The notes under the pieces are model-generated. The model was not told where the DNA came from, did not search any database, and saw nothing but the letters and a program-made list of their open reading frames with translations. Of a DNA stretch of 64,000 nucleotides, positions 1,035 through 63,859 are shown in pieces. How positions within the stretch are numbered: the first letter of the stretch is position 1; each line of letters opens with the position of its first letter. The position numbers and the translations under genes are program-made. The stretch lies in sequence record AP017925.1; one strand, 5' to 3'.

Positions 1035-1064
1035 AGCGCTGGGGAAACCCGGCGCTTTATGCTG
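1035..1064. terminator. hairpin + TTATGCTG between convergent genes
   Basis: AGCGCTGGG-GAAA-CCCGGCGCT then TTATGCTG. Confidence 0.75.
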
Positions 1065-1512
1065 TCGAATGCAATTCCTTCGTAGAGAAGGACAGCGGCA
1101 TCAGCATAATCAGAGAGACGGGGTCAGATAAAGGCTGAACTGCATGAACGTCCGGAAGCTTCATCGCGCTAGGTTCGATACGACGAAGTATCAGGTCACT
1201 GACAGCAGGCGGCTTAGGTGGACCTTCAAGCTCAACGAACTTAACGACAACCGTTTCGCGCGGGATGCGCAGGTCGTCCAAGATCTCAGCAAGCGGCTTA
1301 GACATGCTCAGCACGCAGGTGACGATATTGTTCAGCGTCTCCGCCGTATAGGTATCAGAGTGCCAAGCAAGATGAGCCTCCAACTCACTCCGCGACATGC
1401 GTTGTGCAATCTCCAGCCGTTCCTTCAACGAGAGGACTTTTGTTATCGGTTGGGTATAGCCTGGGTAACGCTGGCCGCCTGGAATCCAGCTAAATTCTTT
1501 AAACATTTGCAT
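1057..1512 (-). CDS. hypothetical protein
   Basis: 151-aa ORF in a minus-strand run ending at the hairpin. Confidence 0.7.
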   Translation of the reverse strand: MQMFKEFSWIPGGQRYPGYTQPITKVLSLKERLEIAQRMSRSELEAHLAWHSDTYTAETLNNIVTCVLSMSKPLAEILDDLRIPRETVVVKFVELEGPPKPPAVSDLILRRIEPSAMKLPDVHAVQPLSDPVSLIMLMPLSFSTKELHSTA

Positions 1513-1518
1513 CGCCCT

Positions 1519-1803
1519 CTAGTCTTTATAAGGAGTCTCTTCACGGAACCATAAGTTACCAGATCGTAGTAGAATTACTCGAAAGAAGAGAGAATCTGGA
1601 GTAGAGCCATCACGACGCCGAGGCTGACGCAACATCCAACCAGTACCATTTGGTCGTTTGAGAACTTCTACTGCGTTAAACTCCTTGCATTCGCGCAGAC
1701 CATGTTTGAGTTCGAGCAGTTCGACATCATCGGCCGGAACCATCATTTTCCTAGGGATGTATGCATCAAACACGAACTCTTTCTTCATGGTTAATTCAGC
1801 CAT
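1519..1803 (-). CDS. hypothetical protein
   Basis: ORF 1519..1815; likely start MAELT at 1803; closely spaced with the next gene. Confidence 0.7.
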   Translation of the reverse strand: MAELTMKKEFVFDAYIPRKMMVPADDVELLELKHGLRECKEFNAVEVLKRPNGTGWMLRQPRRRDGSTPDSLFFRVILLRSGNLWFREETPYKD

Positions 1804-1906
1804 ATTTCTCACCATTTTTTACCCATTGAAAGCATGATTTTGAGGAGCGCCAATCGTATGGAGCCCTCGCTCCTAAACAACTTTTTCCATGTGGAGTAGT
1901 AAACAA

Positions 1907-3634
1907 ATGGACGCAAATACGCCTCAAGACGCACAGCCGGTAGCCGACACTGCGCCGGTGGTTGATACCACCGTAGCCGTCGATACCAGCGCCGCCGCTC
2001 CCGCTCCGGACGCTGCTCCTGCAGTCGCTCCGGCACCGGTGACTGTCAACTACACCGACGCCGCCGGCGTGGTGCAAACCTACGTACTGACTGCTGACCA
2101 GTCGCTCGACTCCAACGGTCTGATCCAACCGGGCAATCTGACCCCGGCTGCTGCAGCTCTGGCTGAAGCCCAAGCTGTTGTGAACGCTGAACAAGCTGCT
2201 GCAGCAACTGCCTCTGCTCCTGCTCCGGCTGCAGAAGCCGCAGCCGCGGTGGAGCAACCTGTTGTGGAAGCCGCTCCGGTGGTTGACGCACAAGTGCAAG
2301 CCGCAGACCCGGTCGAAACCCAAGTCGATGCTTCGGCTACTGTTTCTGCCGACGCTGCTCCCGCGGCACCGACCGAACAACCGGTTCAGACTGAAGCTGC
2401 TCCCGTAGCTGCTGAAGTCGCCGCTCCGGTCGCCGATGCGTCGGCAGCAGCCGTGGAACAACCCGCGGCCGAGCAAGCAGCTCCTGTGGCTGAACAACCG
2501 GAAGCTCAGCCGGTTGAACAAGACCAAGCTGCGGCTCCCGCAGCCGAAGTTCCGGCTGCGCCTGTTGCTGACGCTCCAGCGGAAGCAGCTCCGGCTGCGG
2601 AAGTTCAACCTGTCGCTGAAGCTGTCGCTCCCGTTGTGGAACAGCCGGTTGCTGAAGAAGCAGCTGCTCCGCAAGAAACTCAGTCCGTCGCTGCACCGGC
2701 AGCTGAACAAGCTGCTCCGGAAGCTCCGGTCGTTGCTGAACAAGCTCCGACCACCGATGCTCCTGATGCTCCTGATACTCAAGCTGAAGCGGCACCCTTG
2801 GAAGCTGCGCCGGTAGCCGAAGCACAACCGGCAGAAGTCGATCCGGTGCCTGCTGTGGTTGATGCCCAACCGGCAGCTGAAACCCAAGCTGCCGCTCCTG
2901 CTGAAGTTCAAGCAGAAGCGCCTGCCGTTGTTGCTGAAACTCCGGCTGTCGAACAGGCTCCGGTGCAAGCTGATGCTCCGGCCGCTGTTGAAGTTGCTGC
3001 TCCCGCTGTCGACCAACCGGTCGAAGCGGCACCTGTTGCTGATGCTTCCGCAACTGCTGCTGTTGAAACCTCGGTAGCTGCTGAACCGACTCAAGCGCCG
3101 GTTGGCGACACGGGTGCTGACGCGGCTGCGCCGGCTCCCAGCGCTGACGCTGCTCTGGTTGCACCTGCTCCGGAAACTGCTGCCCCTGTGGCAGAAGCTC
3201 AGCCGGTTGTGGAAGAACCCGTAGCCGAAGCCCCGGCTCCGGAGGCTGCTGTTGTTGAACAGCCTGCTGCTGAACCTGCTCCGGCTGCTGACGCATCCGC
3301 AGCTCCCGCTGAACAAGCTCCGGCTCCGGCCGAAGCTCCGGTTGCCGAGCAACCGGCTGTAGCGGTTGATCCCGTTGCTGAAGTTCCGGCCGCACCCGCC
3401 GCTGATGCGCCGGTTGCTCCGGTTGCGGAAACTCCCGCAGCACCGGCGGAAGCCGCTCCTTCCATCGCTGCGCAAGTTGCGGAAGAAGTGAAGGAAGAGG
3501 TCGGTAAGGCCCTCTCCGAAATGATGCATGACCTGAGTGCTTTCGAGCGCGAGACGATTGACCGCGTGGTCAATCTCCTGCGTCGCGTGAAGCCGCATCA
3601 TCGCAAGAAGATCTTCGAACACTTCGGTGGCTAA
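1907..3634 (+). CDS. Ala/Pro/Glu/Val-rich acidic low-complexity protein with short folded termini
   Basis: ATG at 1907 after GGAG; biased GCT/CCG/GAA codon use; helical C-terminus; followed by a hairpin. Confidence 0.9.
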   Translation: MDANTPQDAQPVADTAPVVDTTVAVDTSAAAPAPDAAPAVAPAPVTVNYTDAAGVVQTYVLTADQSLDSNGLIQPGNLTPAAAALAEAQAVVNAEQAAAATASAPAPAAEAAAAVEQPVVEAAPVVDAQVQAADPVETQVDASATVSADAAPAAPTEQPVQTEAAPVAAEVAAPVADASAAAVEQPAAEQAAPVAEQPEAQPVEQDQAAAPAAEVPAAPVADAPAEAAPAAEVQPVAEAVAPVVEQPVAEEAAAPQETQSVAAPAAEQAAPEAPVVAEQAPTTDAPDAPDTQAEAAPLEAAPVAEAQPAEVDPVPAVVDAQPAAETQAAAPAEVQAEAPAVVAETPAVEQAPVQADAPAAVEVAAPAVDQPVEAAPVADASATAAVETSVAAEPTQAPVGDTGADAAAPAPSADAALVAPAPETAAPVAEAQPVVEEPVAEAPAPEAAVVEQPAAEPAPAADASAAPAEQAPAPAEAPVAEQPAVAVDPVAEVPAAPAADAPVAPVAETPAAPAEAAPSIAAQVAEEVKEEVGKALSEMMHDLSAFERETIDRVVNLLRRVKPHHRKKIFEHFGG

Positions 3635-3664
3635 GAAGTAACGAAGAAAAAAGGTTGGTAAACA

Positions 3665-3702
3665 AAGCCTCCACGGTTTCGGCCGTGGAGGCTTTTATGC
3701 CG
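3665..3702. terminator. hairpin + TTATGCCG between convergent genes
   Basis: AAGCCTCCACGG-TTTCGG-CCGTGGAGGCTT then TTATGCCG. Confidence 0.8.
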
Positions 3703-4392
3703 CTAATTAGGACGCCAGCAACTGGCTTTTTTGAATGCAACGCCTCTGGCCTTATGGTCTGCAGCTTTCCGCATAGCTTCACGAAGCATGGACTCGAAGT
3801 TTTCCTCGAAAAACTTGTCCATGTAAGCCTGCATTTGCAGGCTGTTGAACTTGTCCTCCAAGAAGTCACGAATCGTTTGCAGACCCGCTCCGACCACCTT
3901 CTCACCGCCTGTCTCTGCGACAGTCTCTCCGAAGAAAGCTTTGATCTGCGCCTGACATGTCTGGTCGAATGCATCTCGCATAGCCCTTTCAGCTTTCGCC
4001 ATCATATCCTGCGGAGCGAAGCTGATCTGGAAATGAACGTCGCGACTATCAATCTCACGACGATGCTCAGCATCGATGCTATTCATCAGCCACTCAATCA
4101 GAAACGTGCTCCGGTCACGTAACTGATGGATGCTTAGGTGGTTTAGGTAGAAGGAATGAGCTTCACCATCCGGTGCGGGAGAATCGGAGTACGCTTCCGG
4201 ATATTTATCCCGAGGGAACGCTGACTCAAGCATCACCCTAGGCACCAAAGTGCCCAAGCGCATGACCATATCTCCGGTTATCTTCTCGATAGCCGAAGGT
4301 GAGAGTTCATAGCGTTGCCCAACCGCCAGATAAGTTTCCCCGTTGAGAACTTCTCTCGCAATTTTGATATTGCGAAGCACACGCGCACGCAT
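3703..4392 (-). CDS. hypothetical protein with N-terminal helix-turn-helix-like segment
   Basis: RNIKIAREVLNGETYLAVGQRYELSPSAIEKI resembles an HTH pattern. Confidence 0.7.
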   Translation of the reverse strand: MRARVLRNIKIAREVLNGETYLAVGQRYELSPSAIEKITGDMVMRLGTLVPRVMLESAFPRDKYPEAYSDSPAPDGEAHSFYLNHLSIHQLRDRSTFLIEWLMNSIDAEHRREIDSRDVHFQISFAPQDMMAKAERAMRDAFDQTCQAQIKAFFGETVAETGGEKVVGAGLQTIRDFLEDKFNSLQMQAYMDKFFEENFESMLREAMRKAADHKARGVAFKKASCWRPN

Positions 4393-4402
4393 TTCAGTTA
4401 CC

Positions 4403-5173
4403 TCACGAATTCATGGAGGCTTGATTGATAGCCAGAACACGGCCAGGACGCTCAGGAGTCAGTATCTTGTTGACAGCCAAGCGCCAGAAGTGCTTGTAAG
4501 CCTTCACATTCTCGAAACGACGATGGAAGATGCTGAGACTATGGTTAAGCTTTCCGAGTTTGGTGGTGTTCACGATATCCATCACGCGCAGGCAGAGATG
4601 GAACACTTCTGTCAGCTCAGCATCGCTCTTAGCCAGTTCGTTCAATGCGTGGACGTGACGTTCAGCCATGGCATGAACTTCTACCGTGTCGTCCACTGCC
4701 AGCTTGGCATTGTCGGCCATTTCCATGTCAGTGAAATGATGGCCGTAGGTGGCATAGATGTCTTCCAGCAGACCTTTGTGGTACATGACCGGGAAAGCAG
4801 CACGCCACGAACCAGCAGTGTGCAGAGCTTCCAGATAACGCAGAACACTGTGACTCAGCGCCCATTCATCGTCGCTATAAACCAGCATCATTGCCGCTGC
4901 GATATAACGCAGGTCAACAATCACTTCCATGGTCGGGTGATTGATGATCGCCGAAGTTTTGACGAAGCCCAGACCAGAGTGCTGCATGGCCGGCAACAGG
5001 ATTTCATCCGGCAGCTTGAACTTCTCGACCAGCCGCTGGTAGTCTGCCACGCTAGCGTAGCCATCTTCTGCGATGACTTCTTTGATCTCAGCCATCGCTT
5101 GGTCGATGATGGGGTTAGTGCGACGCATTTCATTCGGCTTTTGGTTCTCGATCGAAGTGTTGGTGCGTTTCAT
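4403..5173 (-). CDS. hypothetical protein
   Basis: 256-aa ORF with AAGGA RBS before 5173. Confidence 0.8.
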   Translation of the reverse strand: MKRTNTSIENQKPNEMRRTNPIIDQAMAEIKEVIAEDGYASVADYQRLVEKFKLPDEILLPAMQHSGLGFVKTSAIINHPTMEVIVDLRYIAAAMMLVYSDDEWALSHSVLRYLEALHTAGSWRAAFPVMYHKGLLEDIYATYGHHFTDMEMADNAKLAVDDTVEVHAMAERHVHALNELAKSDAELTEVFHLCLRVMDIVNTTKLGKLNHSLSIFHRRFENVKAYKHFWRLAVNKILTPERPGRVLAINQASMNS

Positions 5174-5202
5174 GCTGCTTTTCCTTTTAGATGTATAGAG
5201 AC

Positions 5203-5238
5203 AGCCACCGGGGTGGTGAACCCGGTGGCTTTATGCTG
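5203..5238. terminator. hairpin flanked by TTATGCTG
   Basis: AGCCACCGGG-GTGGTGAA-CCCGGTGGCT then TTATGCTG. Confidence 0.75.
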
Positions 5239-5239
5239 C

Positions 5240-6607
5240 TTAGCCCTTGAAGCCCAAAACAGCACCACCATTCGAGACACAGATACGCTTACGCGGCTTG
5301 CGCAGCGCTTCAGCCAGCGAGACGTCCTTCACCGGTACGGTTTCGAACTCAGGCAAGCCATTAGCTGCGCGAGCCGCAATAGCTTCCGTCGGAGTCAACA
5401 GACGGCAGTTGACAACGTCGTAGCAACGACCCGGACGCATCAGCGCCGAATCGATATCGGTAGTCTTCGACAGGTTGGTAGTGAAGATGATCTTGCGGGT
5501 ATGGTTCGAACCGATGCCGTCCGTTTCATTCAGCAACTCAGGCATGATCAAGTTGCCTTGGGAACGCGGTGCCAGCAATTGATCGGCGTCTTCCACCACG
5601 ATGATCGGCACACGTACTTCTTCCTCTTCTTCATTTTTCTTCTTCTTCTTCTCAAACAGAGGCTGACCGGCCAAGAACTCCTTGTCTTGGATCAGAGACT
5701 CAGTAAACAAGTCGCTGCGGGCCTTGGCCGAAGTACCGGCGACTTTGGCCATATACTCGTCGCTGCACTTGAACACGAAGTTTACAAAGTCCTTGTCCAG
5801 AATGGCATCAGCCTTCTTGGCATAGATCGGCAGCAGATTGAGCGCATCAACTGCTGCAGACACTGCCGAACTTTTACCAGTGCCAGGAGGCCCCATCAGG
5901 ATCAGCACCGTCTCTTCGGATTCGATGAAGTCTTTCAACAGTGCTTCGACGCCACCGTCCAAGTACGGGTAGTATTCCGGAAGAGCGATGCGTTTGTTGT
6001 CGATCTTGCCAGTGACGCATCTCAGGCCGTCGCCACCGCTCATGATCGACAACATGCCGTGCGAACCACCCTTGACCACTTCTGCATAGGTGGATTTCTT
6101 TTCCACCAGTTCGTCGGTCTTGATGTTCGCTTTGATAACTTCGCGGAATTCGAGCACCAGATGTTCCACACCGCAGAAATCAATCGCGATATTGGAGGAG
6201 TGACTTCCGTCGATATCCAAAAGCATGAGCGGGCGGTTGTAATCATCCAGCAGTATGAAAAGACCGCGGCCGAGACGAATGAAACCTTTCTCTTCGACGT
6301 ACTGGAAGAACCAGGCATCGCTTTCGAAGTAGTGCTCGTTGTTGAGCAAGTTCTTGGTGCTTCCGGAAGCATGCGGAAGACCATTGGCGACGTTGAAAGC
6401 CCGCACCATCCCGCTATCGGTGTTCTTGCTATCCTTGTTTTCGAAGCCATCGCTGTTCATCCAGGAGAACAGTGCATCACCGAACGATTCGAACTTCGAA
6501 TCCAGAGTCTTCACGACAGCCGGGCTAGCCGGAAGCAGGTCGGCGATATGGTCGAGCGCGGACTTGGAGGTCTTGGTGTCAACAGCGTGCAGGGTCGATT
6601 CTTTCAT
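5240..6607 (-). CDS. AAA+ family ATPase
   Basis: Walker A GPPGTGKS, Walker B IIVVEDAD, sensor TTN, SRH-like DSALMRPGR. Confidence 0.9.
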   Translation of the reverse strand: MKESTLHAVDTKTSKSALDHIADLLPASPAVVKTLDSKFESFGDALFSWMNSDGFENKDSKNTDSGMVRAFNVANGLPHASGSTKNLLNNEHYFESDAWFFQYVEEKGFIRLGRGLFILLDDYNRPLMLLDIDGSHSSNIAIDFCGVEHLVLEFREVIKANIKTDELVEKKSTYAEVVKGGSHGMLSIMSGGDGLRCVTGKIDNKRIALPEYYPYLDGGVEALLKDFIESEETVLILMGPPGTGKSSAVSAAVDALNLLPIYAKKADAILDKDFVNFVFKCSDEYMAKVAGTSAKARSDLFTESLIQDKEFLAGQPLFEKKKKKNEEEEEVRVPIIVVEDADQLLAPRSQGNLIMPELLNETDGIGSNHTRKIIFTTNLSKTTDIDSALMRPGRCYDVVNCRLLTPTEAIAARAANGLPEFETVPVKDVSLAEALRKPRKRICVSNGGAVLGFKG

Positions 6608-6679
6608 GATGCTTTCCTTTACTAAAGTACAGTGGTGGTGGTGAAAATAAGGATATTTATCCTATCATTACTCATGCTG

Positions 6680-6687
6680 GTAATATG
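6680..6687 (-). promoter_or_regulatory. possible phage early promoter (CATATTAC, one mismatch to TATATTAC)
   Basis: In AT-rich intergenic DNA about 75 nt upstream of the AAA ATPase. Confidence 0.35.
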
Positions 6688-6709
6688 TTGCTAACGGATT
6701 TTTGAAACC

Positions 6710-6746
6710 AGCATAAAGGCCCGGGTTTCCCCGGGCCGCTTATGAC
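6710..6746. terminator. GCATAA-hairpin-TTATGA element
   Basis: CAGCATAA AGGCCCGGG-TTTC-CCCGGGCC GCTTATGA. Confidence 0.75.
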
Positions 6747-6752
6747 GTCGCA

Positions 6753-7178
6753 TTACTTAACCGCACCTTGCTGAATAATGCCATAATCACGCATGTCTTC
6801 AACCTGCATGATCTCCCACGACTTCAGGAGACGCACGAGAACCCACTCTTCGCCTTTCTTCTCGAACAAGCCATTCTTACACAAGCTTCCATTCAAGTCA
6901 GCTGCGTAGTCCGGGTTTTCATGGATGAGGATGAGTCCATTGGGAAGAATGTTGCGACCCCACTGTTCCCACAACTCTTTCGGCGGAGATGTCGGATGTT
7001 TCTGCTCGTACTCCAACCGCATACTGCAAGTGTTGAAATCACAGAGCATTCCATCGACATGAGCGCAGCTGCCATTCTCTTTGTCCAGATAGACCCGGCA
7101 ATGTTTCACCGGGTCAGTCGGATCACCGCAGAACAGCTTCTTGAAGAAGGTCCCGACTGCTTGTAAGCGACTCATCAT
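6753..7178 (-). CDS. Cys-containing hypothetical protein
   Basis: ATG at 7178 overlaps the upstream stop (ATGA coupling). Confidence 0.7.
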   Translation of the reverse strand: MMSRLQAVGTFFKKLFCGDPTDPVKHCRVYLDKENGSCAHVDGMLCDFNTCSMRLEYEQKHPTSPPKELWEQWGRNILPNGLILIHENPDYAADLNGSLCKNGLFEKKGEEWVLVRLLKSWEIMQVEDMRDYGIIQQGAVK

Positions 7179-7501: not shown

Positions 7502-7504
7502 GGT

Positions 7505-8797: not shown

Positions 8798-8802
8798 GGT
8801 TC

Positions 8803-17333: not shown

Positions 17334-17376
17334 CGGCATAAAAGAGGGACCGGTGGTACGAAACCACCAGTCTCTC
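17334..17376 (-). terminator. hairpin + TTTTATGCCG
   Basis: On the minus strand follows the stop of 17380..18159. Confidence 0.7.
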
Positions 17377-18928: not shown

Positions 18929-18957
18929 CAGCATAAAAGCCGGGTTACCCCGGCCTT
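18929..18957 (-). terminator. hairpin + TTTTATGCTG
   Basis: GCCGGG-GTAA-CCCGGC then TTTTATGCTG on the minus strand. Confidence 0.75.
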
Positions 18958-18958
18958 T

Positions 18959-19448: not shown

Positions 19449-19486
19449 GAAACTTCCTTAAACAAAAAATAAAAGATGGTAGAAAG

Positions 19487-19519
19487 AGCCCGAGGATTGC
19501 TCCTCGGGCTTTTATGCCG
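19487..19519. terminator. hairpin flanked by TTTTATGCCG
   Basis: AGCCCGAGG-ATTGCT-CCTCGGGCT then TTTATGCCG. Confidence 0.75.
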
Positions 19520-21837: not shown

Positions 21838-21935
21838 GATGGCGCCTAGCTCTTTGGCTGGCGTCCAGTGCACGCTCGTAAGAGCAATGCTTATATGCGT
21901 ACTCCATTTAGAATACGCATATAAGCATGCACTGC
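21838..21935. ncRNA. candidate structured RNA with a 15-bp perfect stem
   Basis: ATGCTTATATGCGTA/TACGCATATAAGCAT, GCTC-GTAA-GAGC, CAGTGCA/TGCACTG closing helix. Confidence 0.35.
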
Positions 21936-21959
21936 CTCAGTCGAGACAGTGCTGGTGTT

Positions 21960-22268
21960 TTATGCGAAGCGACGCTTCAGTCTGACTTCAGTCAGTACCT
22001 TCATCACTACTGCCAGCACGAAGCCGATTACCAGGCAGCAGAATAGGAAGGTAGTGGTCCCTTCGACGTTAACGAACAACGACATTGCAATACCGCCAAC
22101 CCACATGGCGTGGATAGCAAGGCTATGCTTTTGCAATTCGGTTTGCCATTCCTTGTACTTACCGACTCGATGCGCTACGAATGCAGAGATGGCGCACACT
22201 ACTACTTGTGCAACCAAGAACCAGGTCAGCAGGTAGAAGTCGGAATTGAAAGTGGTGATGTAATTCAT
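21960..22268 (-). CDS. membrane protein with about 3 TM segments
   Basis: 102 aa; AAGGAG RBS. Confidence 0.8.
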   Translation of the reverse strand: MNYITTFNSDFYLLTWFLVAQVVVCAISAFVAHRVGKYKEWQTELQKHSLAIHAMWVGGIAMSLFVNVEGTTTFLFCCLVIGFVLAVVMKVLTEVRLKRRFA

Positions 22269-22373: not shown

Positions 22374-22403
22374 CGGCATAAAGGGGTGCCTAAAGGCACC
22401 CCT
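22374..22403 (-). terminator. hairpin + TTTATGCCG
   Basis: GGGGTGCC-TTTA-GGCACCCC then TTTATGCCG after the stop of 22410..23771. Confidence 0.8.
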
Positions 22404-22409
22404 CGACGC

Positions 22410-27454: not shown

Positions 27455-27511
27455 GATTGACTCGTGAAGTATGGATAGGAAACGTCTTTTTCAGACTCAC
27501 AACAATTTGCG

Positions 27512-27586
27512 GACATAAATGCCCCCTCCAATAGCGCTTAAACGGCCCTAGAACCGTTTAAGACGCTCTGGAGAGGGATTATGTCG
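27512..27586. terminator. long imperfect hairpin flanked by ACATAA/TTATGT
   Basis: CCCTCCA..AGCG.CTTAAACGG / CCGTTTAAG.CGCT..TGGAGAGGG. Confidence 0.6.
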
Positions 27587-27589
27587 TCA

Positions 27590-30320: not shown

Positions 30321-30374
30321 GCTAGAACCTCCAGCAAAAATTTGCATGATGAGTATCTCTTTATAAAAGACAAA

Positions 30375-30418
30375 AGGGAGTAAGGGAGCCGAAGCCCCCT
30401 TACTCTCTCGTTATGCCG
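30375..30418. terminator. hairpin flanked by TTATGCCG
   Basis: GGGAGTAAGGG-AGCCGAAGCC-CCCTTACTCTC then GTTATGCCG. Confidence 0.7.
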
Positions 30419-33272: not shown

Positions 33273-33317
33273 CAGCATAGAAGGCAATAGGCACGGGTGT
33301 GCCTATTGCCCCTATGT
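33273..33317. terminator. GCATAG-hairpin-CTATG element
   Basis: GGCAATAGGCAC-GG-GTGTGCCTATTGCC. Confidence 0.7.
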
Positions 33318-33356
33318 TTGGTTACACGGAGTCGAGAAGACGCCTATGTCGGCCGC

Positions 33357-38052: not shown

Positions 38053-38195
38053 GGTTTTTTCTCCATTCGAATGGAATTAATCTAAAGAAATCGCGCGATT
38101 CTTGAATAGGACAAATTCCCCGCCAGCATAAATGACGGCGAGGCTGTTCTATACAATGGTGTTTTGGCTAGGCGGTATTTACACCGCCTAGGCCA

Positions 38196-45202: not shown

Positions 45203-45247
45203 CGGCATAGGAGCCAGGAGGGTTACCCCTCCTGGCTTTTTATGCTG
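45203..45247. terminator. bidirectional GCATAG-hairpin-TTATGC element
   Basis: AGCCAGGAGG-GTTACC-CCTCCTGGCT between convergent genes. Confidence 0.8.
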
Positions 45248-49936: not shown

Positions 49937-50121
49937 AAACTGTCAGCCATGAATTGTTGAAATAGACGCCGGCTACGAAGGTCCTCTGTGTAGAAAAAAC
50001 CTTCGAGTTTCATTCTTTTGAATAGCGGGCATATGGCCTGCGCTAACCATCACAAGAATACCTTACAAACTGCAGCGATTGTCATAGTAAAAGACATGTC
50101 GTTGCAGTATGAGTACACGAC

Positions 50122-52008: not shown

Positions 52009-52050
52009 CAGCATAAAAGAGGAGGGGGCAACCTCTCCTCTTTTTATATC
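52009..52050 (+). terminator. GCATAA-hairpin-U tract
   Basis: AGAGGAGGGG-GCAA-CCTCTCCTCT then TTTTAT. Confidence 0.8.
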
Positions 52051-52076: not shown

Positions 52077-52574
52077 ATGCGCAACATCATTATCTTTGGT
52101 CACAAACAGCACGGTAAGGATACGGCTTGTGAATATCTGGAAGCAAAGTTTGGTGTGAGCTTTGCTTCATCTTCTCGTTTTGCTCTGGATCTTTTCTTAT
52201 TTGAAAAGATGTGCGATGAGTCGTTTGGTTACGAAACGCCTGAAGAATGTTTCAGTGACCGGGTGAACCATCGTAAATACTGGTATGAGGCAATTCGGGA
52301 TTACAACACTCCGAATAAGACACGACTGGGCGGGAAACTGTTTGCCGAATACGATGTCTACTGCGGCATCCGTGACCTAGAAGAGTTCCGCGCGCTCAAA
52401 GCTGCTGGATTGGTTAATCTAGCTATTTTCATTGATGCCAGCGGTCGTCTGGAAAAGGAAGACTCTGAATCCATGAAACTGGATATCGAAGATGCCGATA
52501 TCGTTATTACCAATAACGGTACGCTGGAACAGTTCTACGAGAAACTGGATAAGCTCTTCACGCAGCTGCTGTGA
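52077..52574 (+). CDS. deoxynucleoside monophosphate kinase-like P-loop protein
   Basis: GHKQHGKDT, CGIRDLEE, DIVITNNGTLEQF. Confidence 0.75.
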   Translation: MRNIIIFGHKQHGKDTACEYLEAKFGVSFASSSRFALDLFLFEKMCDESFGYETPEECFSDRVNHRKYWYEAIRDYNTPNKTRLGGKLFAEYDVYCGIRDLEEFRALKAAGLVNLAIFIDASGRLEKEDSESMKLDIEDADIVITNNGTLEQFYEKLDKLFTQLL

Positions 52575-52582
52575 ACATAAGC

Positions 52583-52624
52583 GACATAACGGAGAGAGGG
52601 GAGACCCTCTCTCCTATTATGCCG
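52583..52624. terminator. bidirectional ACATAA-hairpin-TTATGC element
   Basis: GGAGAGAGGG-GAGA-CCCTCTCTCC between convergent genes. Confidence 0.8.
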
Positions 52625-52995: not shown

Positions 52996-53041
52996 GATAC
53001 TCTCCTTAGATAATACTCATTACGGCATAAAATTCTCATAG

Positions 53042-53080
53042 CAGCATAAAAGTCAGGGATTGCTCCCCGACCTCTATGTG
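53042..53080 (-). terminator. hairpin + TTTTATGCTG
   Basis: GTCGGGGA-GCAA-TCCCTGAC then TTTTATGCTG. Confidence 0.65.
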
Positions 53081-53201
53081 CTTCAGTTCATCAACTCACC
53101 CCGCTCTCAGAACCTCCCCGGCTAAGAGAAGCCCACGAATGTAAACCAGGTGGAGGACATCTTAACGTGGTTGCCGTTTCGCGCGTAGCCGATATACTGA
53201 T

Positions 53202-53229
53202 AGCATAAAAGGCTGGGTTTCCCCAGCCT
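53202..53229 (-). terminator. hairpin + TTTTATGC
   Basis: AGGCTGGG-GAAA-CCCAGCCT then TTTATGC. Confidence 0.75.
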
Positions 53230-53234
53230 CTTAC

Positions 53235-53535
53235 TTTGTGCCCGGACGGTGTTCTCTCCTAAGCGAGGTACTATGCGTCCGCATTCGAATTGTAGAAGAA
53301 AGCACTGTGTCTCCCGACATGAGTGCAGTCTTGTGGTCACTACTGGCCTAGTGCTAAAAATAGAAGTGCTTTTCCGAGGTCTCAATGACTCACGGATGTT
53401 TCGCCAATGCAGTTCGGCCGTGCAGAGTTCTCATGCCCAAGGGCCTGTGCTGTGTCCCCGCGATGGGGTTTAATCAGCCGTGTACGACGTTTGAGAACTG
53501 TGCTTCGTTTCCACATAACATAGGGTGCTACCCTG
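53235..53535. ncRNA. candidate structured non-coding RNA
   Basis: No convincing ORF; nested stems AGTTCTCA/TGAGAACT, GCCC/GGGC, GCTG/CAGC, CCCC/GGGG, AGGGT/ACCCT. Confidence 0.3.
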
Positions 53536-57485: not shown

Positions 57486-57494
57486 AGTCCCGTT

Positions 57495-58823
57495 ATGAAC
57501 AAGCGTGAGTTTTATCTCAAAGCTCTAGCCTCCGAGGCTTACCTCGTGACGGCCTGGAACATTGCTTGCTTCAGTCTGATTGCCGAAGGGCCGGAAGACT
57601 GGAAAGCCAAGCCCTATCCGTATCGACTGGTGCAACTCCCCAACGCGCACTACTTCGTCGATCCTGAAGACACCACCAAACTGGTGTTGATCGAAGACAG
57701 CACACCCGGCAAACCACTCTTTGTCCGCAATGAGCTGGTGCAGCTTGAACCCGGCGATATGCCGAACGTGTTTGCTCCGATTACCACCACGTACGGTAAC
57801 GTGCTGGCCAACCAGATCATGCTGGTGCGTCCGTTCGGTGGGAAGATCGGTTTTATGACTGGCCGTATCTCGACCAAGAAGATCGAGAAGATCATCGAGA
57901 TGCGGTTGCAGGATCGTCCGGCGGCTGAACTGGTAGATGGCAATCAGCCCGAACCAGATTTGGCACTGGCCCCGATCTACGTAGATGAGTATCAGCGCTA
58001 CTGCGACGGAGCTTTCTCACTGGTAGCCTATACCCAGCTGTTCACTCCAGCCGATACCCGCAAGACCATGACACCGCCACCGGGTATCAAGCAACTGCGT
58101 GATATGCTGGTCAAGCAGAACGCTGGTCACCTGCATGACCGTGCTGTGGTGGCTGAGATCGCCGAGAAACTCCAAAAGGTCGATGCTGACTACCTGAAGG
58201 GCGATCGTGGTGAAGACTTCCTGACTTCTGACAAGTCCCGCAAGATCGTGCGCTCACGTCTGTTCCTGATGTACGGTGCGGAAACCGGCATTGAAGAAAA
58301 GGTGGACGTGGATCTGATCGAACGCTCACTCACGGAAGGCTGGGACGTTAACAAGTTCCCGACCATGAACAATGCTCTGCGTGCAGGCTCGTTCAACCGT
58401 GGTAAGCAAACCGAGCTGGGTGGCGAAGCTGTGAAGGATCTGTTCAGAGCTTCGGGTAACCTGAAGATCTCCAGTCCTGACTGTGGCTCCACCGTAGGTC
58501 TGCCTTCCTTCTTCACTGAACAAGACGCTGAACGCATCATCGGCTTCAGTGTGATTGAAGAAGGTGGCCCGACCAAGATCACGCATGACAACGTCGGTAA
58601 GTATCTGGGCAAAGCAATTTCGCTCCGTTCTCCGATGACCTGCAAGAACAGTCACACTGACTACTGTGCAGTGTGTCTGGGTGATCGTCTGGCTAACACT
58701 CCGACTGGTCTGTCGATGGCTGTGGCTGATTATGGTTCTGCCTTCTTGGCGATCTACATGTCTGCCGCTCACTCGAAAGGTATTCAGGTAGCACGTCTGA
58801 ATATCAAAGACCAGCTGATGTAG
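57495..58823 (+). CDS. split RNA polymerase beta-prime middle subunit, virion RNAP type (phiKZ gp80-like)
   Basis: Bridge-helix-like GSFNRGKQTELGG and Zn site DCGS...RSPMTC...CAVCLG as in the beta-prime C-terminal Zn domain. Confidence 0.85.
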   Translation: MNKREFYLKALASEAYLVTAWNIACFSLIAEGPEDWKAKPYPYRLVQLPNAHYFVDPEDTTKLVLIEDSTPGKPLFVRNELVQLEPGDMPNVFAPITTTYGNVLANQIMLVRPFGGKIGFMTGRISTKKIEKIIEMRLQDRPAAELVDGNQPEPDLALAPIYVDEYQRYCDGAFSLVAYTQLFTPADTRKTMTPPPGIKQLRDMLVKQNAGHLHDRAVVAEIAEKLQKVDADYLKGDRGEDFLTSDKSRKIVRSRLFLMYGAETGIEEKVDVDLIERSLTEGWDVNKFPTMNNALRAGSFNRGKQTELGGEAVKDLFRASGNLKISSPDCGSTVGLPSFFTEQDAERIIGFSVIEEGGPTKITHDNVGKYLGKAISLRSPMTCKNSHTDYCAVCLGDRLANTPTGLSMAVADYGSAFLAIYMSAAHSKGIQVARLNIKDQLM

Positions 58824-58853
58824 GGCAAAAAAAAAATAGCAAGATAGGCTAGG

Positions 58854-58889
58854 CTAGAGTACCCCTTCCGGGGTACTCTAGTTATGCCG
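58854..58889. terminator. hairpin + TTATGCCG with upstream A10
   Basis: CTAGAGTACCCC-TTCC-GGGGTACTCTAG; convergent genes. Confidence 0.85.
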
Positions 58890-58912
58890 CTTTATTTAGA
58901 ATTAGTTAGTTA

Positions 58913-59083
58913 TTAAACACCACCGCAGTCCGGACAGCAATCATAACCTACTGCACCAGGTCCATACATTTCTTCGTACGGGATCAAGGGCTTGGTTGAA
59001 CCACAATACCCACACCGGTATTGGTAGACGGTATCCGTTTCTTTTTCCAAAGATGTTTCTTTTGTTTCGTGGTTCGTGCACAT
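58913..59083 (-). CDS. small Zn-ribbon protein, 56 aa (below the ORF-track cutoff)
   Basis: Manual translation MCTNHETKE...YRCGYCGS...DCCPDCGGV; AGGAAGG RBS. Confidence 0.75.
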   Translation of the reverse strand: MCTNHETKETSLEKETDTVYQYRCGYCGSTKPLIPYEEMYGPGAVGYDCCPDCGGV

Positions 59084-59146
59084 GCTGGTTCCCTTCCTAT
59101 TTAGAATTAGAATTTAAACCATATCCGTTTATGGTTCACACTGAGT

Positions 59147-59172
59147 ATATGTGGTTGAAATAAATTTCATTT
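59147..59172 (-). promoter_or_regulatory. putative phage promoter AAATGA-N-TTTCAACCACATAT
   Basis: Second copy of the motif at 22332. Confidence 0.55.
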
Positions 59173-59175
59173 AAC

Positions 59176-59204
59176 CGGCATAAAGGGAGGGCCGAAGCCC
59201 TCCC
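59176..59204 (-). terminator. hairpin + TTTATGCCG
   Basis: GGGAGGGC-TTCG-GCCCTCCC then TTTATGCCG. Confidence 0.85.
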
Positions 59205-59212
59205 CTCGTTAC

Positions 59213-59779
59213 TTAGTACGGAAAATCAGCCTTCTTGATCTTCACCATGCGACCATCAGCGTGATGCCACACGATGCCCTCAATCGGCTTATCACTCAGG
59301 TAGTCCATCAGTTCATTAAAGCTGCGCGGGCAATCCACCAGCACGTCTTCTCCGTGAGGCACTAGCACGTGTTCAGTGAGTTGCTCCGGATTGGCTCCAT
59401 GACGAGTACCAATCTTCGGACCACACACTTCATACGTCCCGTCAGGCACGCCTTGCGGATACCTAGAGACCGCTTTGTCGATCGCTTCACGGATATAAAC
59501 GGAGTCAGGACCAGTAGCAGGCACCCAACCCGGCCAGTGTCCACTGATAGGGTCCGGATTAGGCTGAGCAGGAACAAAGTCTAGAGGCGGAGTACGCCCA
59601 GTCTTTGCATCGTAACGCTTAAACACATTACCTGCCTTAACCATAACAGCTACGCCATCCCACTTACGAGTAGCACAGCCTTCCCCTTCCTGTACCCATT
59701 CTGCACCAGCACAGACTTCGTCACGAACTTTACGGTTACCTTCGTAGTTACGCTGAAACAGCGAAATGATTTTCTTCAC
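59213..59779 (-). CDS. DUF5565/RLIG1-like ATP-dependent RNA ligase
   Basis: GTG start (MKKIISLFQRNY); motif I ATRKWDG, YEVCGP, EGIVW, KIK nucleotidyltransferase motifs. Confidence 0.75.
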   Translation of the reverse strand: MKKIISLFQRNYEGNRKVRDEVCAGAEWVQEGEGCATRKWDGVAVMVKAGNVFKRYDAKTGRTPPLDFVPAQPNPDPISGHWPGWVPATGPDSVYIREAIDKAVSRYPQGVPDGTYEVCGPKIGTRHGANPEQLTEHVLVPHGEDVLVDCPRSFNELMDYLSDKPIEGIVWHHADGRMVKIKKADFPY

Positions 59780-59908
59780 GATACTTCCTTCGGTAGGTTT
59801 CGATAATTTTTCGAATCCCATCTCCACCACCGAAGTTACTTCTACTGCTACTGCCAGCATAAGCGAGAGGTTTCCCTCCCGCCTACGGTTAGGTTGTTTG
59901 GTCATTGC

Positions 59909-59990
59909 TTTCTGAGGGAGGATTCGAACCTCCAATTTTGGTCTGAGACCGGACCCAACGACAGGCCGACTGTGTTGCTGCGTCCGAGAA
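59909..59990 (-). tRNA. degenerate tRNA-like element (pseudo-tRNA; anticodon not assignable)
   Basis: Perfect T arm GGAGG-TTCGAAT-CCTCC; acceptor TTCTCGG/CTCAGAA with one mismatch; D stem GCAG/CTGT; aberrant anticodon arm; no CCA. Confidence 0.45.
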
Positions 59991-60145
59991 CGCAACCCTT
60001 GCTAGAATTCACAGCCCTGCAGATTTCCTCTTCCAGCCCTAAGGCGTTCAAGTACAGTCCACGTGTATACCAATTCCACCACTCATCAACCTAACGGAGA
60101 GACCTACGGTTTCTCCCTATCAAATTAACCAACCCTGTAAAAAAG

Positions 60146-60445
60146 TTACATACTGGTCAAGATCTTCTCCGACAGCACCACGACCGGAGAATACATCTTG
60201 AGTGTCTTCTCATGGTCATTCCCTTCTTCGAGCTTCAGCTCGCTCAAGGTGTACTCGTTCTCGACCATGACCTCGACGTGGTCTTGCAACAGGTCTTTGA
60301 TCATGGAGAGAATAGCAGTCTTGCCACTACCGATCTTTCCTTCGATCGTGATCTTTACAATCGGCTTAGCATTGCCAGCCAACAGCACGTCATCAGCAAG
60401 ACTGATGACAGGAGTCTGACGAACTGCGGGTTCTTGATTCTGCAT
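60146..60445 (-). CDS. small P-loop-containing hypothetical protein
   Basis: ITIEGKIGSGKT; AAAGGAG RBS. Confidence 0.75.
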   Translation of the reverse strand: MQNQEPAVRQTPVISLADDVLLAGNAKPIVKITIEGKIGSGKTAILSMIKDLLQDHVEVMVENEYTLSELKLEEGNDHEKTLKMYSPVVVLSEKILTSM

Positions 60446-60748
60446 GGTGTTCTCCTTTACGGTGTGGTGAATACTAATAACTTAGTCTCGTAGTAAAAAT
60501 TGCATGTCTCGTAAGTTATTGATTATAATAGAGATAGTGGGTCGACTCCTTAACGATGGCTTGGTTTCTGTGAAAATTACAGAACACTTTAATCTCATGC
60601 GAGTGCGTAATATCGCTCGTGGGGTTGGTGCGAAATGCACGCCAGAGGCGTGGGCTTTATTAAGCTTATATACAAGAGGGGTCATCCTTCTTATAGACAC
60701 TGGCAGGAGTCAGTGCTCCTTAGCTATTCACTACTGACGGAGGAAGAC

Positions 60749-60973
60749 ATGGGCTGTGCAGAGATCATGGAGTCGACTACGCTAGAAGAGGAGGAGTGTC
60801 TCGCTATCCTCTATCCGTGGCAGTGTTGGTCGAAGGGAATGACTCAGTATGAAGAGTTTCGTTCTCTGGAAGAGATGGCGAAAGCCAAGGCTCTGAGTGT
60901 GGACGTGATCATGGATGCCATTGCAAGCAACAAGGGCAATCTGGATGACCTGCACTTCGTGAAGCGTGCTTAA
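60749..60973 (+). CDS. hypothetical protein
   Basis: ATG after GGAGG; ends at the hairpin-TTTATGCCG element. Confidence 0.65.
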   Translation: MGCAEIMESTTLEEEECLAILYPWQCWSKGMTQYEEFRSLEEMAKAKALSVDVIMDAIASNKGNLDDLHFVKRA

Positions 60974-60976
60974 GTC

Positions 60977-61011
60977 GACGAGGGTGGGTGACGCCACTCT
61001 CGTTTATGCCG
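60977..61011 (+). terminator. hairpin + TTTATGCCG
   Basis: ACGAGGGTGG-GTGACG-CCACTCTCGT then TTATGCCG. Confidence 0.75.
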
Positions 61012-61068
61012 CCTATTAGTTGGAGTGACCTATTGTCCTCTCTTCCATCAACCATCGAGATAAAACTC

Positions 61069-61428
61069 ATGTTTAGCTTCCTTCACTTTACCTTCCCTGT
61101 GTTGTTGTTCATCCTGATCGCTGGTCACTGCTTTGGTGACTTTGTGTTCCAAGGCGACTTCATGGCCAAGACCAAGAACCACAAGCTGGAACCTGATCCA
61201 TGCTTCTGGGTGCCGGTACTGCTTGCTCACTGCATGGTGCATGCACTTCTGGTGCTCCTGATCACTGGTGTGTTCTGGACAGCTATCGTCATGCTGGTAA
61301 CTCACATCCTGATCGACTTTGCCAAGTGTCAAGGTTGGTTGGGTAAGGGAGGTTTGGCCTTCTTGGCTGACCAATTGCTGCATCTGTTCGTGGTGATTAT
61401 GATCGCTGTGCAACTTACGCTGTTATAA
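61069..61428 (+). CDS. DUF3307-like membrane protein
   Basis: GHCFGDFVFQ, AHCMVH, THILIDFAK, DQLLH His/Asp pattern. Confidence 0.85.
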   Translation: MFSFLHFTFPVLLFILIAGHCFGDFVFQGDFMAKTKNHKLEPDPCFWVPVLLAHCMVHALLVLLITGVFWTAIVMLVTHILIDFAKCQGWLGKGGLAFLADQLLHLFVVIMIAVQLTLL

Positions 61429-61538
61429 TAGCTGTTGCAGCCCTTTTAAAGGCCCTAGGAGCGTTTGTTACGCTCCTAGAGTAACTTTGTATGTGGCGCA
61501 GGTAGTCACGCTCTAAAGGGCTTTTATAAGGAGTTACC

Positions 61539-62009
61539 GTGAGTTGGCAATGCAAGCTGATTCCCATCGTAGGGACTAAGCACGTCCGGTTTGATCCGCC
61601 GAAAGACAACTGTATCGTTGGCAAGACGTTCTTGGTGCATGAGAACGGAGAGCTACTCGATCACAAAGAGCTAGAACCGGGATCGATGTTCTTCGTACCG
61701 GAGAACGCAGACATGAATGAGTGGCCTTGGTATCTGGCCACTCCGGACAACATCAGCGATCTGTACAAAGAAGTCCGTCCGTTGTTCGTGGTATTGCCTG
61801 ACCAGTCCTTGTTTCTGGTGCATGGCAAGTGCTGGTCGAATGGCCAAAAGTATGGTGGCTGGACGGTGACTGGTGAAGCACCAGAGATCACTGTTCATCC
61901 GTCGATCAATCTGGTCGGCTTCTATCATGGCTGGATTCATAACGGCATCGTGTCGGATGATTGCGAAGGACGGCAGTTTCCTCCTAAGCTGATAGACGCC
62001 TCAGCATAA
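61539..62009 (+). CDS. hypothetical protein with C-terminal DUF6527-like domain
   Basis: GTG after AAGGAG; WTVTGEAPEITVHPSI...YHGWIHNG. Confidence 0.7.
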   Translation: MSWQCKLIPIVGTKHVRFDPPKDNCIVGKTFLVHENGELLDHKELEPGSMFFVPENADMNEWPWYLATPDNISDLYKEVRPLFVVLPDQSLFLVHGKCWSNGQKYGGWTVTGEAPEITVHPSINLVGFYHGWIHNGIVSDDCEGRQFPPKLIDASA

Positions 62010-62082
62010 CCCTATTGTGTGCTTGAGGGTTTGTCCATCCAAACTCAATTTCCACCTCTTTTATTTCTTGGAGTTTTATTCC

Positions 62083-62859
62083 ATGTCGACCCTGAACACC
62101 AAAGCTGGTGCTACCCAGCTGCAAGAAGACATCGCTGCTGAAGACGCAGCTGCGCAACAGCAAGAAACCACCACTCCGGTGCAAGAACAGACCGGTACGA
62201 GTGACCAGACCGGTCAAGAGCAAACTGCTCAAAGCACCGAAGGCGCTACTGGTGAGCAAGAAAGCGCTGGTGAACAACAGCAACAGGAAGAGCAAGACAT
62301 CATCACTCAACCCGTCGCTGTAGAACCGACTGCTCCTGTGGCCAAGTCTGCTCCGGCGGTCGTGGTGATGGAAGCTGCTGCACCGGTGGCTGCTGATGCT
62401 GCCCTGCATGAAAAGCTGGCCGGCATCCTGAAGGACGTGCCGGCGGCACATCAGACCGACATCGGTCGCATCCTGACCTACTTGGAGCGCATGGCTCCGA
62501 AGCGTCCGGTGGATGTGAAATCCGGCGTGACCGAACAGGTTGCTCTGTACAAGGCCATCCAGAACATCATCAACCGCCAGGGTGATTATTTCACTCAGCT
62601 GTTCTCGGCCTTGCTGTTCATCTTCAAGAGCGAAGCCCGAGGTGCGCTGAGCGATCGTTATCGTTGCCGCTTCATGGACAACATCACGCTGGCTGTCGGT
62701 GACCGCAAGGCCTTTGTCAACCTGACCCAGATGCTGGCGATCCTGGCTGATCCGAAGAGCCGTGAACTGGCCATGAAACAAGTGCATATGGAGCGCGCAC
62801 TGGAAAATGGTCTGACCGTCGAAGGCCGCACTCGCGTGTTGCACTACTTCGGCGTGTAA
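62083..62859 (+). CDS. conserved hypothetical protein with disordered Q/E/T-rich N-terminus
   Basis: Start MSTLN at 62083 after GGAG; helical C-terminal domain. Confidence 0.8.
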   Translation: MSTLNTKAGATQLQEDIAAEDAAAQQQETTTPVQEQTGTSDQTGQEQTAQSTEGATGEQESAGEQQQQEEQDIITQPVAVEPTAPVAKSAPAVVVMEAAAPVAADAALHEKLAGILKDVPAAHQTDIGRILTYLERMAPKRPVDVKSGVTEQVALYKAIQNIINRQGDYFTQLFSALLFIFKSEARGALSDRYRCRFMDNITLAVGDRKAFVNLTQMLAILADPKSRELAMKQVHMERALENGLTVEGRTRVLHYFGV

Positions 62860-62950
62860 GCACATCTCGAAGTAAGTTTCATATCCTCCCTTCTACCCTC
62901 CCACAAAGAGGGTGGAAGGGGTTTATGTCTGTAATAAAGGAATAGTAAAG

Positions 62951-63796
62951 ATGGACATGTCTAAGGTAAGCAAGTCCGACGTCGCGCAACTGCAACGTGC
63001 TCTGCGTGAGAATGTAGCACCTTCCCTTAACCCGGATGGTGTATGGGGTAATGCCAGCGTCGCTGCATTTGCGCAATTCGCTCAAACAACCGGTACGGAC
63101 GAAGCAGGTGCAATGGCGCTGTTGCACAAGTACGCAGATCTGCGCTATGTGAACGATGACGCCTATGCTCAAGCAGCCAAGGCGCTGGGTGTACCACAGA
63201 GTTACGTGCGTGCCATTCAGCAAGTGGAAACTACGGGCTCCTCGTTCCTGCCAGATGGCCGAGTGAAGATCCTCTTTGAGCGGCAATGGTTCTACCAGAA
63301 GCTCAAGGGTGCTATCGCTTCGAACGCTGCTACGCGCGCTAACGTAGCAGCCAAGCTGAAATCCACCGCTACTGACGTTGCCACGCTGATGACCCAGATG
63401 GTGCAACAGTTCGGTGACATCTGCAATCCGGTGCGTGGTGGTTACCAAGGCGGTGCCGCTGAGTGGGATCGTCTGAACAAGGCAATGGACTTCGACGTTG
63501 AGTCTGGTGCTCAGGCCGCCAGTTACGGTGGCTACCAGCTGATGGGCTTCAACTACAAGGGCTGTGGTTACAGCTCCGGTAAAGCCATGATGCTGGCGCT
63601 GGCTGCTTCGGAATCGTGCCAGTTCTTGGCGATGATTTCGTTCATCAAGTCGAACCCCAATCTCTGGAGTTCGTTCAAGGCTGCAAACTGGGCTGCTTTT
63701 GCTGAGGGCTACAACGGCTCCCAGTACAAGCAGAACAACTACGACACCAAGCTGGCCTCGGCAGAGCAGTCTTCACGTTCGTACAACGTCGCTTAG
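62951..63796 (+). CDS. modular endolysin: peptidoglycan-binding domain + N-acetylmuramidase (DUF3380/Muramidase family)
   Basis: LQRAL...DGVWG PG-binding motif; VET..., KILFERQWF, SYGGYQLMGFNY, WAAFAEGYNG. Confidence 0.92.
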   Translation: MDMSKVSKSDVAQLQRALRENVAPSLNPDGVWGNASVAAFAQFAQTTGTDEAGAMALLHKYADLRYVNDDAYAQAAKALGVPQSYVRAIQQVETTGSSFLPDGRVKILFERQWFYQKLKGAIASNAATRANVAAKLKSTATDVATLMTQMVQQFGDICNPVRGGYQGGAAEWDRLNKAMDFDVESGAQAASYGGYQLMGFNYKGCGYSSGKAMMLALAASESCQFLAMISFIKSNPNLWSSFKAANWAAFAEGYNGSQYKQNNYDTKLASAEQSSRSYNVA

Positions 63797-63812
63797 CAGC
63801 AAAAAAAAACAG

Positions 63813-63859
63813 CAGCATAAGCGAGAGTACCCCGAAGGGTACTCTCGCTCTTTATGCCG
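63813..63859. terminator. bidirectional GCATAA-hairpin-TTATGC element
   Basis: GCGAGAGTACCC-CGAA-GGGTACTCTCGC flanked by both half-motifs; A9 upstream. Confidence 0.85.

Follow-up and report, generated by a model that had tools for sequence, protein, structure and literature searches.

The intergenic regions of a 64,000-nucleotide stretch of sequence record AP017925.1 (the window), which belongs to the phiKZ-like Ralstonia jumbo phages RP12/RP31, carry GC-rich hairpins that are followed within a few nucleotides by the word TTATGCYG. Most probably, the phage's own multisubunit RNA polymerases (RNAPs) end transcription at these elements, which would be the RP12/RP31 version of the phiKZ-type terminator, and we infer that RNA 3′ ends form at them in RP12. 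An earlier note on this DNA had offered three readings of the motif, namely a termination or pausing signal for the phage RNAPs, an RNA processing site and a symmetric DNA protein-binding site. The first is supported by a tail like that found at mapped phiKZ 3′ ends, by placement at gene 3′ ends in RP12 and by rifampicin-resistant replication; the symmetric binding site found no support in the distribution of the elements described below.

RP12 and RP31 belong to the jumbo phages related to phiKZ (PMC5468394). Over a 6-kb piece the window matches both at 100% identity, and the full window aligns to positions 189255-253248 of RP12 (record AP017924) with 99.77% identity (138 substitutions and 4 indels), and therefore represents RP31 or a sibling; gene coordinates before ~27.5 kb are offset by 5-7 nt. 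Genome-wide counts were made on the RP12 genome (280 kb) and, unless stated otherwise, refer to it. Genes of the window were taken from the GenBank table and those of whole genomes from a self-trained open reading frame (ORF) caller, which agreed near-exactly with that table (284-286 genes against 290 annotated).

Hairpins with a fixed tail at gene 3′ ends

A fold-based scan of the window returned 23 strong intergenic elements with folding free energies (dG) of −15 to −30 kcal/mol, or 24 when the long hairpin at 27511-27589 is counted (Table 1). At all 21 sites listed in the earlier note a GC-rich hairpin is flanked by TTATG(C)YG on the 3′ side and/or GCATAA on the 5′ side, and the elements at 21915, 59855 and 61447 are additions to that list. 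Its statement that nearly every intergenic hairpin bears the motif was too strong, as 18 of the 36 in the window do so when tested strictly, to which inspection by eye adds a few. Scanning the whole window for Rfam families and tRNAs gave no matches.

We counted the association from both directions. Searching for the motif, we found 77 exact copies of TTATGCYG in the genome compared with 23 for a reversed-sequence control. Sixty-two of the 77 were intergenic, and ~58 of these lay directly 3′ of a hairpin (0/23 controls). A strict finder that demanded a hairpin stem of at least 6 bp within 4 nt accepted 48 copies and again none of the 23 controls; it missed 21 intergenic copies, of which 17-18 come after a hairpin that is strong though imperfect. 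Folding with RNAfold at a threshold of dG ≤ −8 was unspecific (17/23 reversed-control sites passed) and was replaced by this stem-based test together with inspection by eye. Free-standing intergenic copies are rare, numbering 3-4 in the genome; one is an exact TTATGCTG at window positions 38124-38131 on the − strand, which has no upstream hairpin (dG −1).

When the search instead started from intergenic hairpins with a stem of at least 7 bp, and TATG was sought from −3 to +9 of the stem end, it was present on 104 of the 314 flanks of 157 hairpins, against a background of 4.3% (binomial P = 1.6e-61). Genic hairpins carried TATG on only 22 of 1200 flanks, corresponding to an odds ratio of 26.5 in favour of intergenic hairpins. 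Alignment on TATG gave the consensus T(79%)-TATG-C(71%)-Y(96%)-G(78%), that is stem-(T)TTATGCYG, with the tail core beginning 0-4 nt 3′ of the stem on 100-104 arms. As the earlier note had observed, the stems are mostly unrelated, any 7-mer being common to at most 6 of 76, and a long U tract is often missing: only 21 of 104 tails have at least five T among 8 nt, and the other 83 fall short. Ahead of ATG the run of T is 1-4 nt long, and a generic terminator scan overlooks most of the elements. TATG tails are scattered along the whole genome, in which they showed no clear segregation into early and late regions. The ATG of the tail was rejected as a start codon, since the median open frame is 10.5 codons.

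The elements are tied to the ends of genes. Of 19 hairpins at convergent junctions 18 are tailed, 13 having tails on both sides, compared with 3 of 18 at divergent junctions, and this contrast recurs in phiKZ, 201phi2-1, RSF1, FLC4-3B and FLC9. Between co-directional genes the hairpin starts a median of ~10-14 nt past the upstream stop codon, and the next start codon follows the tail at distances of anything between 12 and 369 nt. Among arms that follow the end of a gene on the same strand, 45% have a TATG tail and only 12% a canonical T tract. This placement marks a signal for transcript ends rather than a promoter or a symmetric DNA site.

Single elements were followed between RP12 and FLC4-3B, the proteins of which share a median identity of 62%. 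Twenty-six RP12 elements separate genes that are neighbours in FLC4-3B as well, where 14 of the junctions have a hairpin with a tail, 3 a hairpin without a tail and 9 no hairpin. Those that keep the tail often have a quite different stem. By these sequence comparisons, selection is on the structure and the tail, not on the stem sequence.

Relation to the phiKZ terminator

In phiKZ, ONT-cappable-seq defined 133 termination regions, and 61 predicted intrinsic terminators at RNA 3′ ends share the motif 5′-BCCYCCCCHWWDGGGRRGGBYTTATKYYGT-3′, in which TTAT comes after a stem-loop (Putzeys et al. 2024; PMC10914365). In 201phi2-1, motif A (n=59) 'strongly resembles' the phiKZ motif, and 15 bidirectional terminators were reported (PMC11512511). 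The tail of RP12, TTATGCYG(Y)T, and that of phiKZ, YTTATKYYGT, are one and the same word, and our own scan of the phiKZ genome recovered TTATG-Y-Y-G-T with a stem-to-tail spacing equal to that in RP12. As in both relatives, TTAT-K-Y-Y-G-(T) comes immediately after a GC-rich stem-loop, the elements are intergenic and lie just after genes, they are two-way at convergent pairs and some copies are antisense. RP12 also shares with phiKZ the two multisubunit enzymes, a virion RNAP together with a non-virion one (nvRNAP); a β′ subunit gene lies in the window and a homologue of the phiKZ subunit GP123 is present in the genome. The two phages differ in that the RP12 tail is sharper (G after TTAT, then C in 71%, Y in 96% and G in 78%), in that RP12 stems are free whereas those of phiKZ share CCYCCCC...GGGRRGG, and in genome GC content (53% in RP12, the host of which is Ralstonia, against 37% in phiKZ).

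The elements resemble canonical intrinsic terminators in having a GC-rich hairpin just past the stop codon and then a U-rich sequence, and the A-rich 5′ flank that mirrors the U-rich 3′ flank in canonical two-way terminators is found here as well. In contrast to these, however, the U run is 1-4 nt and is followed by a fixed AUGCYG, which canonical terminators do not have. With so few tails reaching five T in eight, they fall outside the canonical class with its U tract of ~7-9 nt. The papers describing the RP12/RP31 and FLC genomes do not mention promoters, terminators or motifs. Where the earlier note was unable to say whether the motif had been described, the answer is that it is undescribed for RP12/RP31 and the FLC phages, but known for the family through phiKZ and 201phi2-1.

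RP12 and RP31 replicate in 20 µg/ml rifampicin (PMC5468394), and the phage RNAPs must therefore read these stops. The same observation rules out that host RNAP alone explains termination, a possibility that the earlier note had reckoned with.

Taken as a terminator, the element would work on a plan in which a GC-rich RNA hairpin with a free stem is followed within 0-4 nt by a fixed (T)TTATGCYG instead of a long U tract. The hairpin would form in the gene-sense transcript just past the stop codon, and the short U-rich UUAU would weaken the RNA-DNA hybrid. TATG on the non-template strand may then be re-read by the pocket of a β-like subunit that reads TATG at late promoters, holding the polymerase long enough for hairpin-driven RNA release. 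Tails on both sides, the usual arrangement where genes converge, would stop transcription from either direction.

Orientation of tails and loops

The earlier note described the motif as preceding the stem in the transcript at 5203, 19487, 30375 and 52009 and following it at 17334, 18929, 22374 and 59176, which matches the GenBank annotation. Its more general claim that orientation is free of gene direction was right in so far as tails can face against genes, but sense-facing tails are about twice as common (71 compared with 33 arms) and the polarity of the loop follows the gene. Co-directional hairpins comprise 25 with a sense-only tail, 15 with an antisense-only tail and 15 with both. Because only ~5 antisense tails are expected by chance, the antisense class is real. 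Antisense-only hairpins still lie 7-37 nt past the upstream stop, and on the sense side they have flanks that are either rich in T or just short of the motif (TTGTGCTG and TTGTGCCG, for example).

Stable tetraloops (GNRA or UNCG) were scored by strand in the intergenic hairpins of seven phiKZ-like genomes. In sense-only elements the tetraloop was found on the gene-sense strand, which is also the tail strand, in 53 of 75 cases and on the other strand in 3. Antisense-only elements likewise had it on the gene-sense strand (18/37) rather than on the tail strand (3/37), and tail-less intergenic hairpins did so in 90 of 172 cases, against 5 of 172 on the opposite strand. Sense-strand loops in the window are GCAA at 19487 and 52009 and UUCG at 30375. 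From this polarity it follows that in every case the gene-sense RNA is the one for which the hairpin is built. The antisense tail would then most plausibly be an addition that lets the stop work in both directions, or makes it tight against antisense transcription alone; where a sense-built hairpin has only an antisense tail, antisense transcription is most likely blocked and some sense read-through let pass.

Tails in other jumbo phages

An unbiased 4-mer ranking of hairpin tails in ten jumbo-phage genomes placed TATG at or near the top, as most enriched over background, in RP12, FLC4-3B, FLC9, RSF1, phiKZ, 201phi2-1 and OBP. These seven genomes range from 37 to 56% GC, and the host of FLC9 is Burkholderia. 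The same ranking showed no TATG enrichment in AR9, SPN3US or PCH45. SPN3US tails consist of T tracts and TATT and those of AR9 are T-rich with a weak T/A-rich enrichment, so that both phages, unlike RP12, have plain T-rich tails. PCH45 tails are enriched for TTTT, TTTG, TTGT, GCTG and CTGT, and its hairpins are followed by TTTGTGCTGT-like words; the tail looks like a TGTGCTGT-type tail. The nucleus-forming PCH45 would resemble RP12 in combining unrelated hairpins with a fixed lineage-specific tail, the second base of the core being different (TGTG instead of TATG). Across these sequences the tail follows the phage lineage, not the host.

RSF1 depends on the host polymerase. Compared with RP12, arms after gene ends in RSF1 carry TATG less often (29% against 45%) and T tracts more often (18% against 12%); with only two groups compared, a tie between the need for host polymerase and this shift is at most suggestive.

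A possible link to the TATG pocket

Late promoters of the phiKZ nvRNAP require TATG with G at +1, which is necessary but not sufficient (PMC4666361), and GP123 binds TATG of the non-template strand (PMC12809450). The earlier note had pointed out that the motif contains this late-promoter core, which is correct and possibly relevant to mechanism: the RP12 tail presents the same tetranucleotide on the would-be non-template strand, and core pocket residues of GP123 are kept. The tail is unlike a late promoter in having a GC-rich hairpin ahead of TATG and in its position at gene 3′ ends, with few copies at divergent junctions. The RP12 homologue of GP123 is encoded at genome positions 102145-103821, outside the window, and shares 28% identity. 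Among the 14 contact residues S144, F151, H331, S334 and Q466 are invariant in all seven phages with TATG tails, in which positions 185 and 406 are also aromatic. The homologue from SPN3US, which is without TATG tails, differs at 144, 158, 185, 186 and 334. A profile search detected no GP123 homologue in AR9, which was left out of the comparison. Low-identity columns of the alignment are uncertain, and the pocket argument drawn from it is suggestive only. We tentatively raise the possibility, which we would not call probable, that one TATG pocket that never leaves the enzyme both starts late transcription and stops it, re-capture of TATG taking the place of the U tract.

Alternative explanations

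Several observations weigh against termination by the phage RNAPs. The mapped RNA 3′ ends are those of phiKZ, the RP12 elements being known here from the genome sequence, and the phiKZ ONT-cappable-seq ends by themselves do not tell termination apart from trimming of the RNA back to a hairpin that protects it. Approximately 40% of the hairpins that follow gene ends lack both a TATG tail and a T tract, and 33 tails face away from any same-strand gene end, where a simple terminator model needs none. As regards the pocket, only 5 of the 14 TATG-contact residues of GP123 are identical in RP12, in an alignment at 28% identity, and a literature search found no paper linking the terminator tail to the pocket and, for phiKZ, no published in vitro assay of factor-independent termination by the phage polymerase.

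The tail-less hairpins and the ambiguity of the published phiKZ maps fit elements that serve RNA 3′-end processing or stability, with read-through transcripts cut by an endonuclease in the single-stranded UUAUGC and trimmed by an exonuclease to the hairpin. The elements are indeed strong hairpins at 3′ ends, and hairpins alone may stabilize. We nevertheless consider this unlikely. The tail is kept in phages whose hosts come from four genera (Ralstonia, Burkholderia and two Pseudomonas lineages) and differs between phage lineages, and hence the pattern tracks the phage, not host RNases. Its conserved core is exactly the tetranucleotide read by the phage polymerase, and two-armed elements at convergent junctions fit two-way termination. 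A terminator coupled to a late promoter, in which the tail TATG acts as a start site (G = +1) for restarting sense transcription or for an antisense RNA, draws on the requirement of phiKZ late promoters for TATG and on several RP12 tails that lie 27-32 nt upstream of a start codon, a plausible length for a 5′ untranslated region (UTR), such as those at 17334 and 53023. This arrangement seems improbable as well, although some sites may play both parts. The necessary TATG is not sufficient, and the model late promoter P119L is AT-rich and free of hairpins upstream, whereas positions −4 to −30 are occupied here by a GC-rich stem that would not melt easily. Tails are usual where genes converge and seldom found at divergent junctions, the places in which promoters have to be; their position is anchored to the upstream stop rather than to the downstream start, and nearly all exact copies of TTATGCYG are bound to hairpins. 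In placement and context the elements are accordingly unlike the phiKZ late promoters, which are upstream of late genes, easily melted and hairpin-free. A 6-mer search upstream of genes returned only the tail itself together with T-rich words and words resembling a ribosome-binding site. Hairpin-free TATG upstream of genes showed no significant orientation or distance, a comparison without power, as the result was the same in phiKZ with its known late promoters.

Least credible of all, to a degree that we would regard as very improbable, is an element acting at the DNA level, as a symmetric protein-binding site, a cruciform or a mobile palindromic repeat like the repetitive extragenic palindromic (REP) sequences or miniature inverted-repeat transposable elements (MITEs). 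Two-armed copies do form extended palindromes of the type GCATAAA...TTTATGC. However, motif hairpins are mostly one-armed (47 against 29, or ~60%), stable RNA tetraloops occur almost only on the gene-sense strand, and the placement follows gene ends and avoids divergent junctions. A REP/MITE-like repeat would share sequence along the whole element, while the stems here are unrelated, differ even at orthologous sites and are not copies of one repeat.

Elements of the window

Table 1. Tail-bearing hairpins of the window
Element	Position	Strand	Context and remarks
Hairpin + TTTATGCTG tail	1034..1064	+	After ORF200 (+), convergent with ORF201 (−); dG −19
Hairpin + TTTTATGCCG tail	3664..3702	+	After ORF203 (+), convergent with ORF204 (−); T-rich tail on − side; dG −25
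Hairpin, antisense-facing TTTATGCTG tail	5203..5238	+	Between two − genes; transcript has GCAUAAA, then stem
Two-armed element	6709..6747	.	Between − genes; sense TTTATGCTG, antisense CTTATGACG
Hairpin + TTTTATGCCG tail, gene-sense	17334..17376	−	Variant TTTACGCTG on opposite side
Hairpin + TTTTATGCTG tail, sense	18929..18958	−	Directly 3′ of thymidylate kinase gene stop
Hairpin, antisense-facing TTTTATGCCG tail	19484..19519	+	Between − genes; sense-strand loop of GNRA type
Weaker two-armed hairpin, TATGCG tails	21915..21967	.	dG −17.6
Hairpin + TTATGCCG tail, sense	22374..22404	−	Kept at orthologous FLC4-3B junction
Long imperfect hairpin, tails on both sides	27511..27589	.	−55 kcal/mol, z-score −6.0; sense (−) TTTATGTCCG, + side TTATGTCG
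Hairpin, antisense-facing GTTATGCCG tail	30369..30418	+	Between − genes; sense side has UUCG loop and canonical T-rich tail
Two-armed element	33273..33319	.	Sense (−) TTCTATGCTG, antisense CCTATGTTTG
Two-armed terminator (predicted)	45203..45247	.	Convergent ORF246 (+) / ORF247 (−); dG −24.7
Hairpin, perfect TTTTATGCTG tail, antisense-facing	52009..52044	−	After DNA polymerase gene (+); sense side has GCAA loop and variant TTTTTATATC
Two-armed terminator (predicted)	52573..52624	.	Convergent ORF252 (+) / ORF253 (−); dG −29.6
Hairpin with tandem tail	53023..53082	−	TTTTATGCTG and, 12 nt on, TTTTATGCCG; first bases 19 nt apart; weak CTCTATGTGC on + side
Hairpin + TTTTATGCTA tail	53201..53232	−	Within 540-nt non-coding gap
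Hairpin + GTTATGCCG tail	58852..58889	+	After RNA polymerase β′ subunit gene ORF258 (+); dG −23.9
Hairpin (UUCG loop on − strand) + TTTATGCCG tail	59176..59207	−	After ORF259 (−); opposes 58852 element across 390-nt gap
Hairpin + TTATGCTG tail	59855..59884	−	At ORF259 start
Hairpin + TTTATGCCG tail	60977..61011	+	4 nt past ORF261 (+) stop; same tail and different stem in FLC4-3B
Hairpin + variant tail GTATGTGG, weak member	61447..61496	+	After ORF262 (+)
Hairpin, sense (+) GTTTATGTCTG	62877..62930	.	After ORF264; weak ATATGAAA on − side
Two-armed terminator (predicted)	63813..63859	.	Convergent ORF265 (+) / ORF266 (−); dG −26.3

Some elements stand out from the rest. The hairpin at 27511-27589, between ORF234 and ORF235, is far longer than the other terminator stems. 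At 53023-53049 the second copy of the tandem tail lies 31 nt upstream of the ORF253 start, and this site is a candidate for a terminator-plus-restart arrangement. The adjoining gap between ORF253 and ORF254 (52996-53535, 540 nt, − strand) contains no credible ORF, is divided by the tail-bearing hairpins at 53201 and 53034 and folds better than shuffled sequences (z-score −3.7); it could encode one or two small non-coding RNAs, as reported for phiKZ 5′ UTRs. In the region 58824-59212 the convergent ORF258 and ORF259 have one one-way predicted terminator each, and ~290 nt of unassigned sequence separates the hairpins. A strong hairpin at 50069-50114 (dG −19) ends in TATG 14 nt ahead of the DNA polymerase start codon at a divergent junction. 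In this non-terminator context it may be a 5′-UTR structure or a promoter-proximal element.

Implications

The RP12/RP31 signal is a new example of the known phiKZ-type signal and not a new kind, and homology and anatomy together support reading it as a terminator. Because generic terminator finders require a U tract, they miss ~80% of these stops; by a rule of hairpin plus TTATGCYG, the limits of transcription units would be set in RP12/RP31, in the FLC phages and in their relatives, phages that are studied for the biocontrol of bacterial wilt. Loop polarity adds a usable strand marker in these genomes, as it shows whose RNA a hairpin was built for.

If one pocket did serve both the start and the stop of late transcription, the tail would co-evolve with it, with TATG in phiKZ, RP12 and OBP, TGTG in PCH45 and neither in SPN3US and AR9, and an antisense tail added to a sense-built hairpin would work like a one-way valve, passing operon read-through and stopping antisense transcription. 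The core of the tail comprises the four bases gripped by the phage polymerase, and the tail varies by phage lineage rather than by host. Together, the shared core and the lineage-bound tail give concrete grounds on which to test whether a non-canonical multisubunit polymerase terminates in a sequence-specific way.

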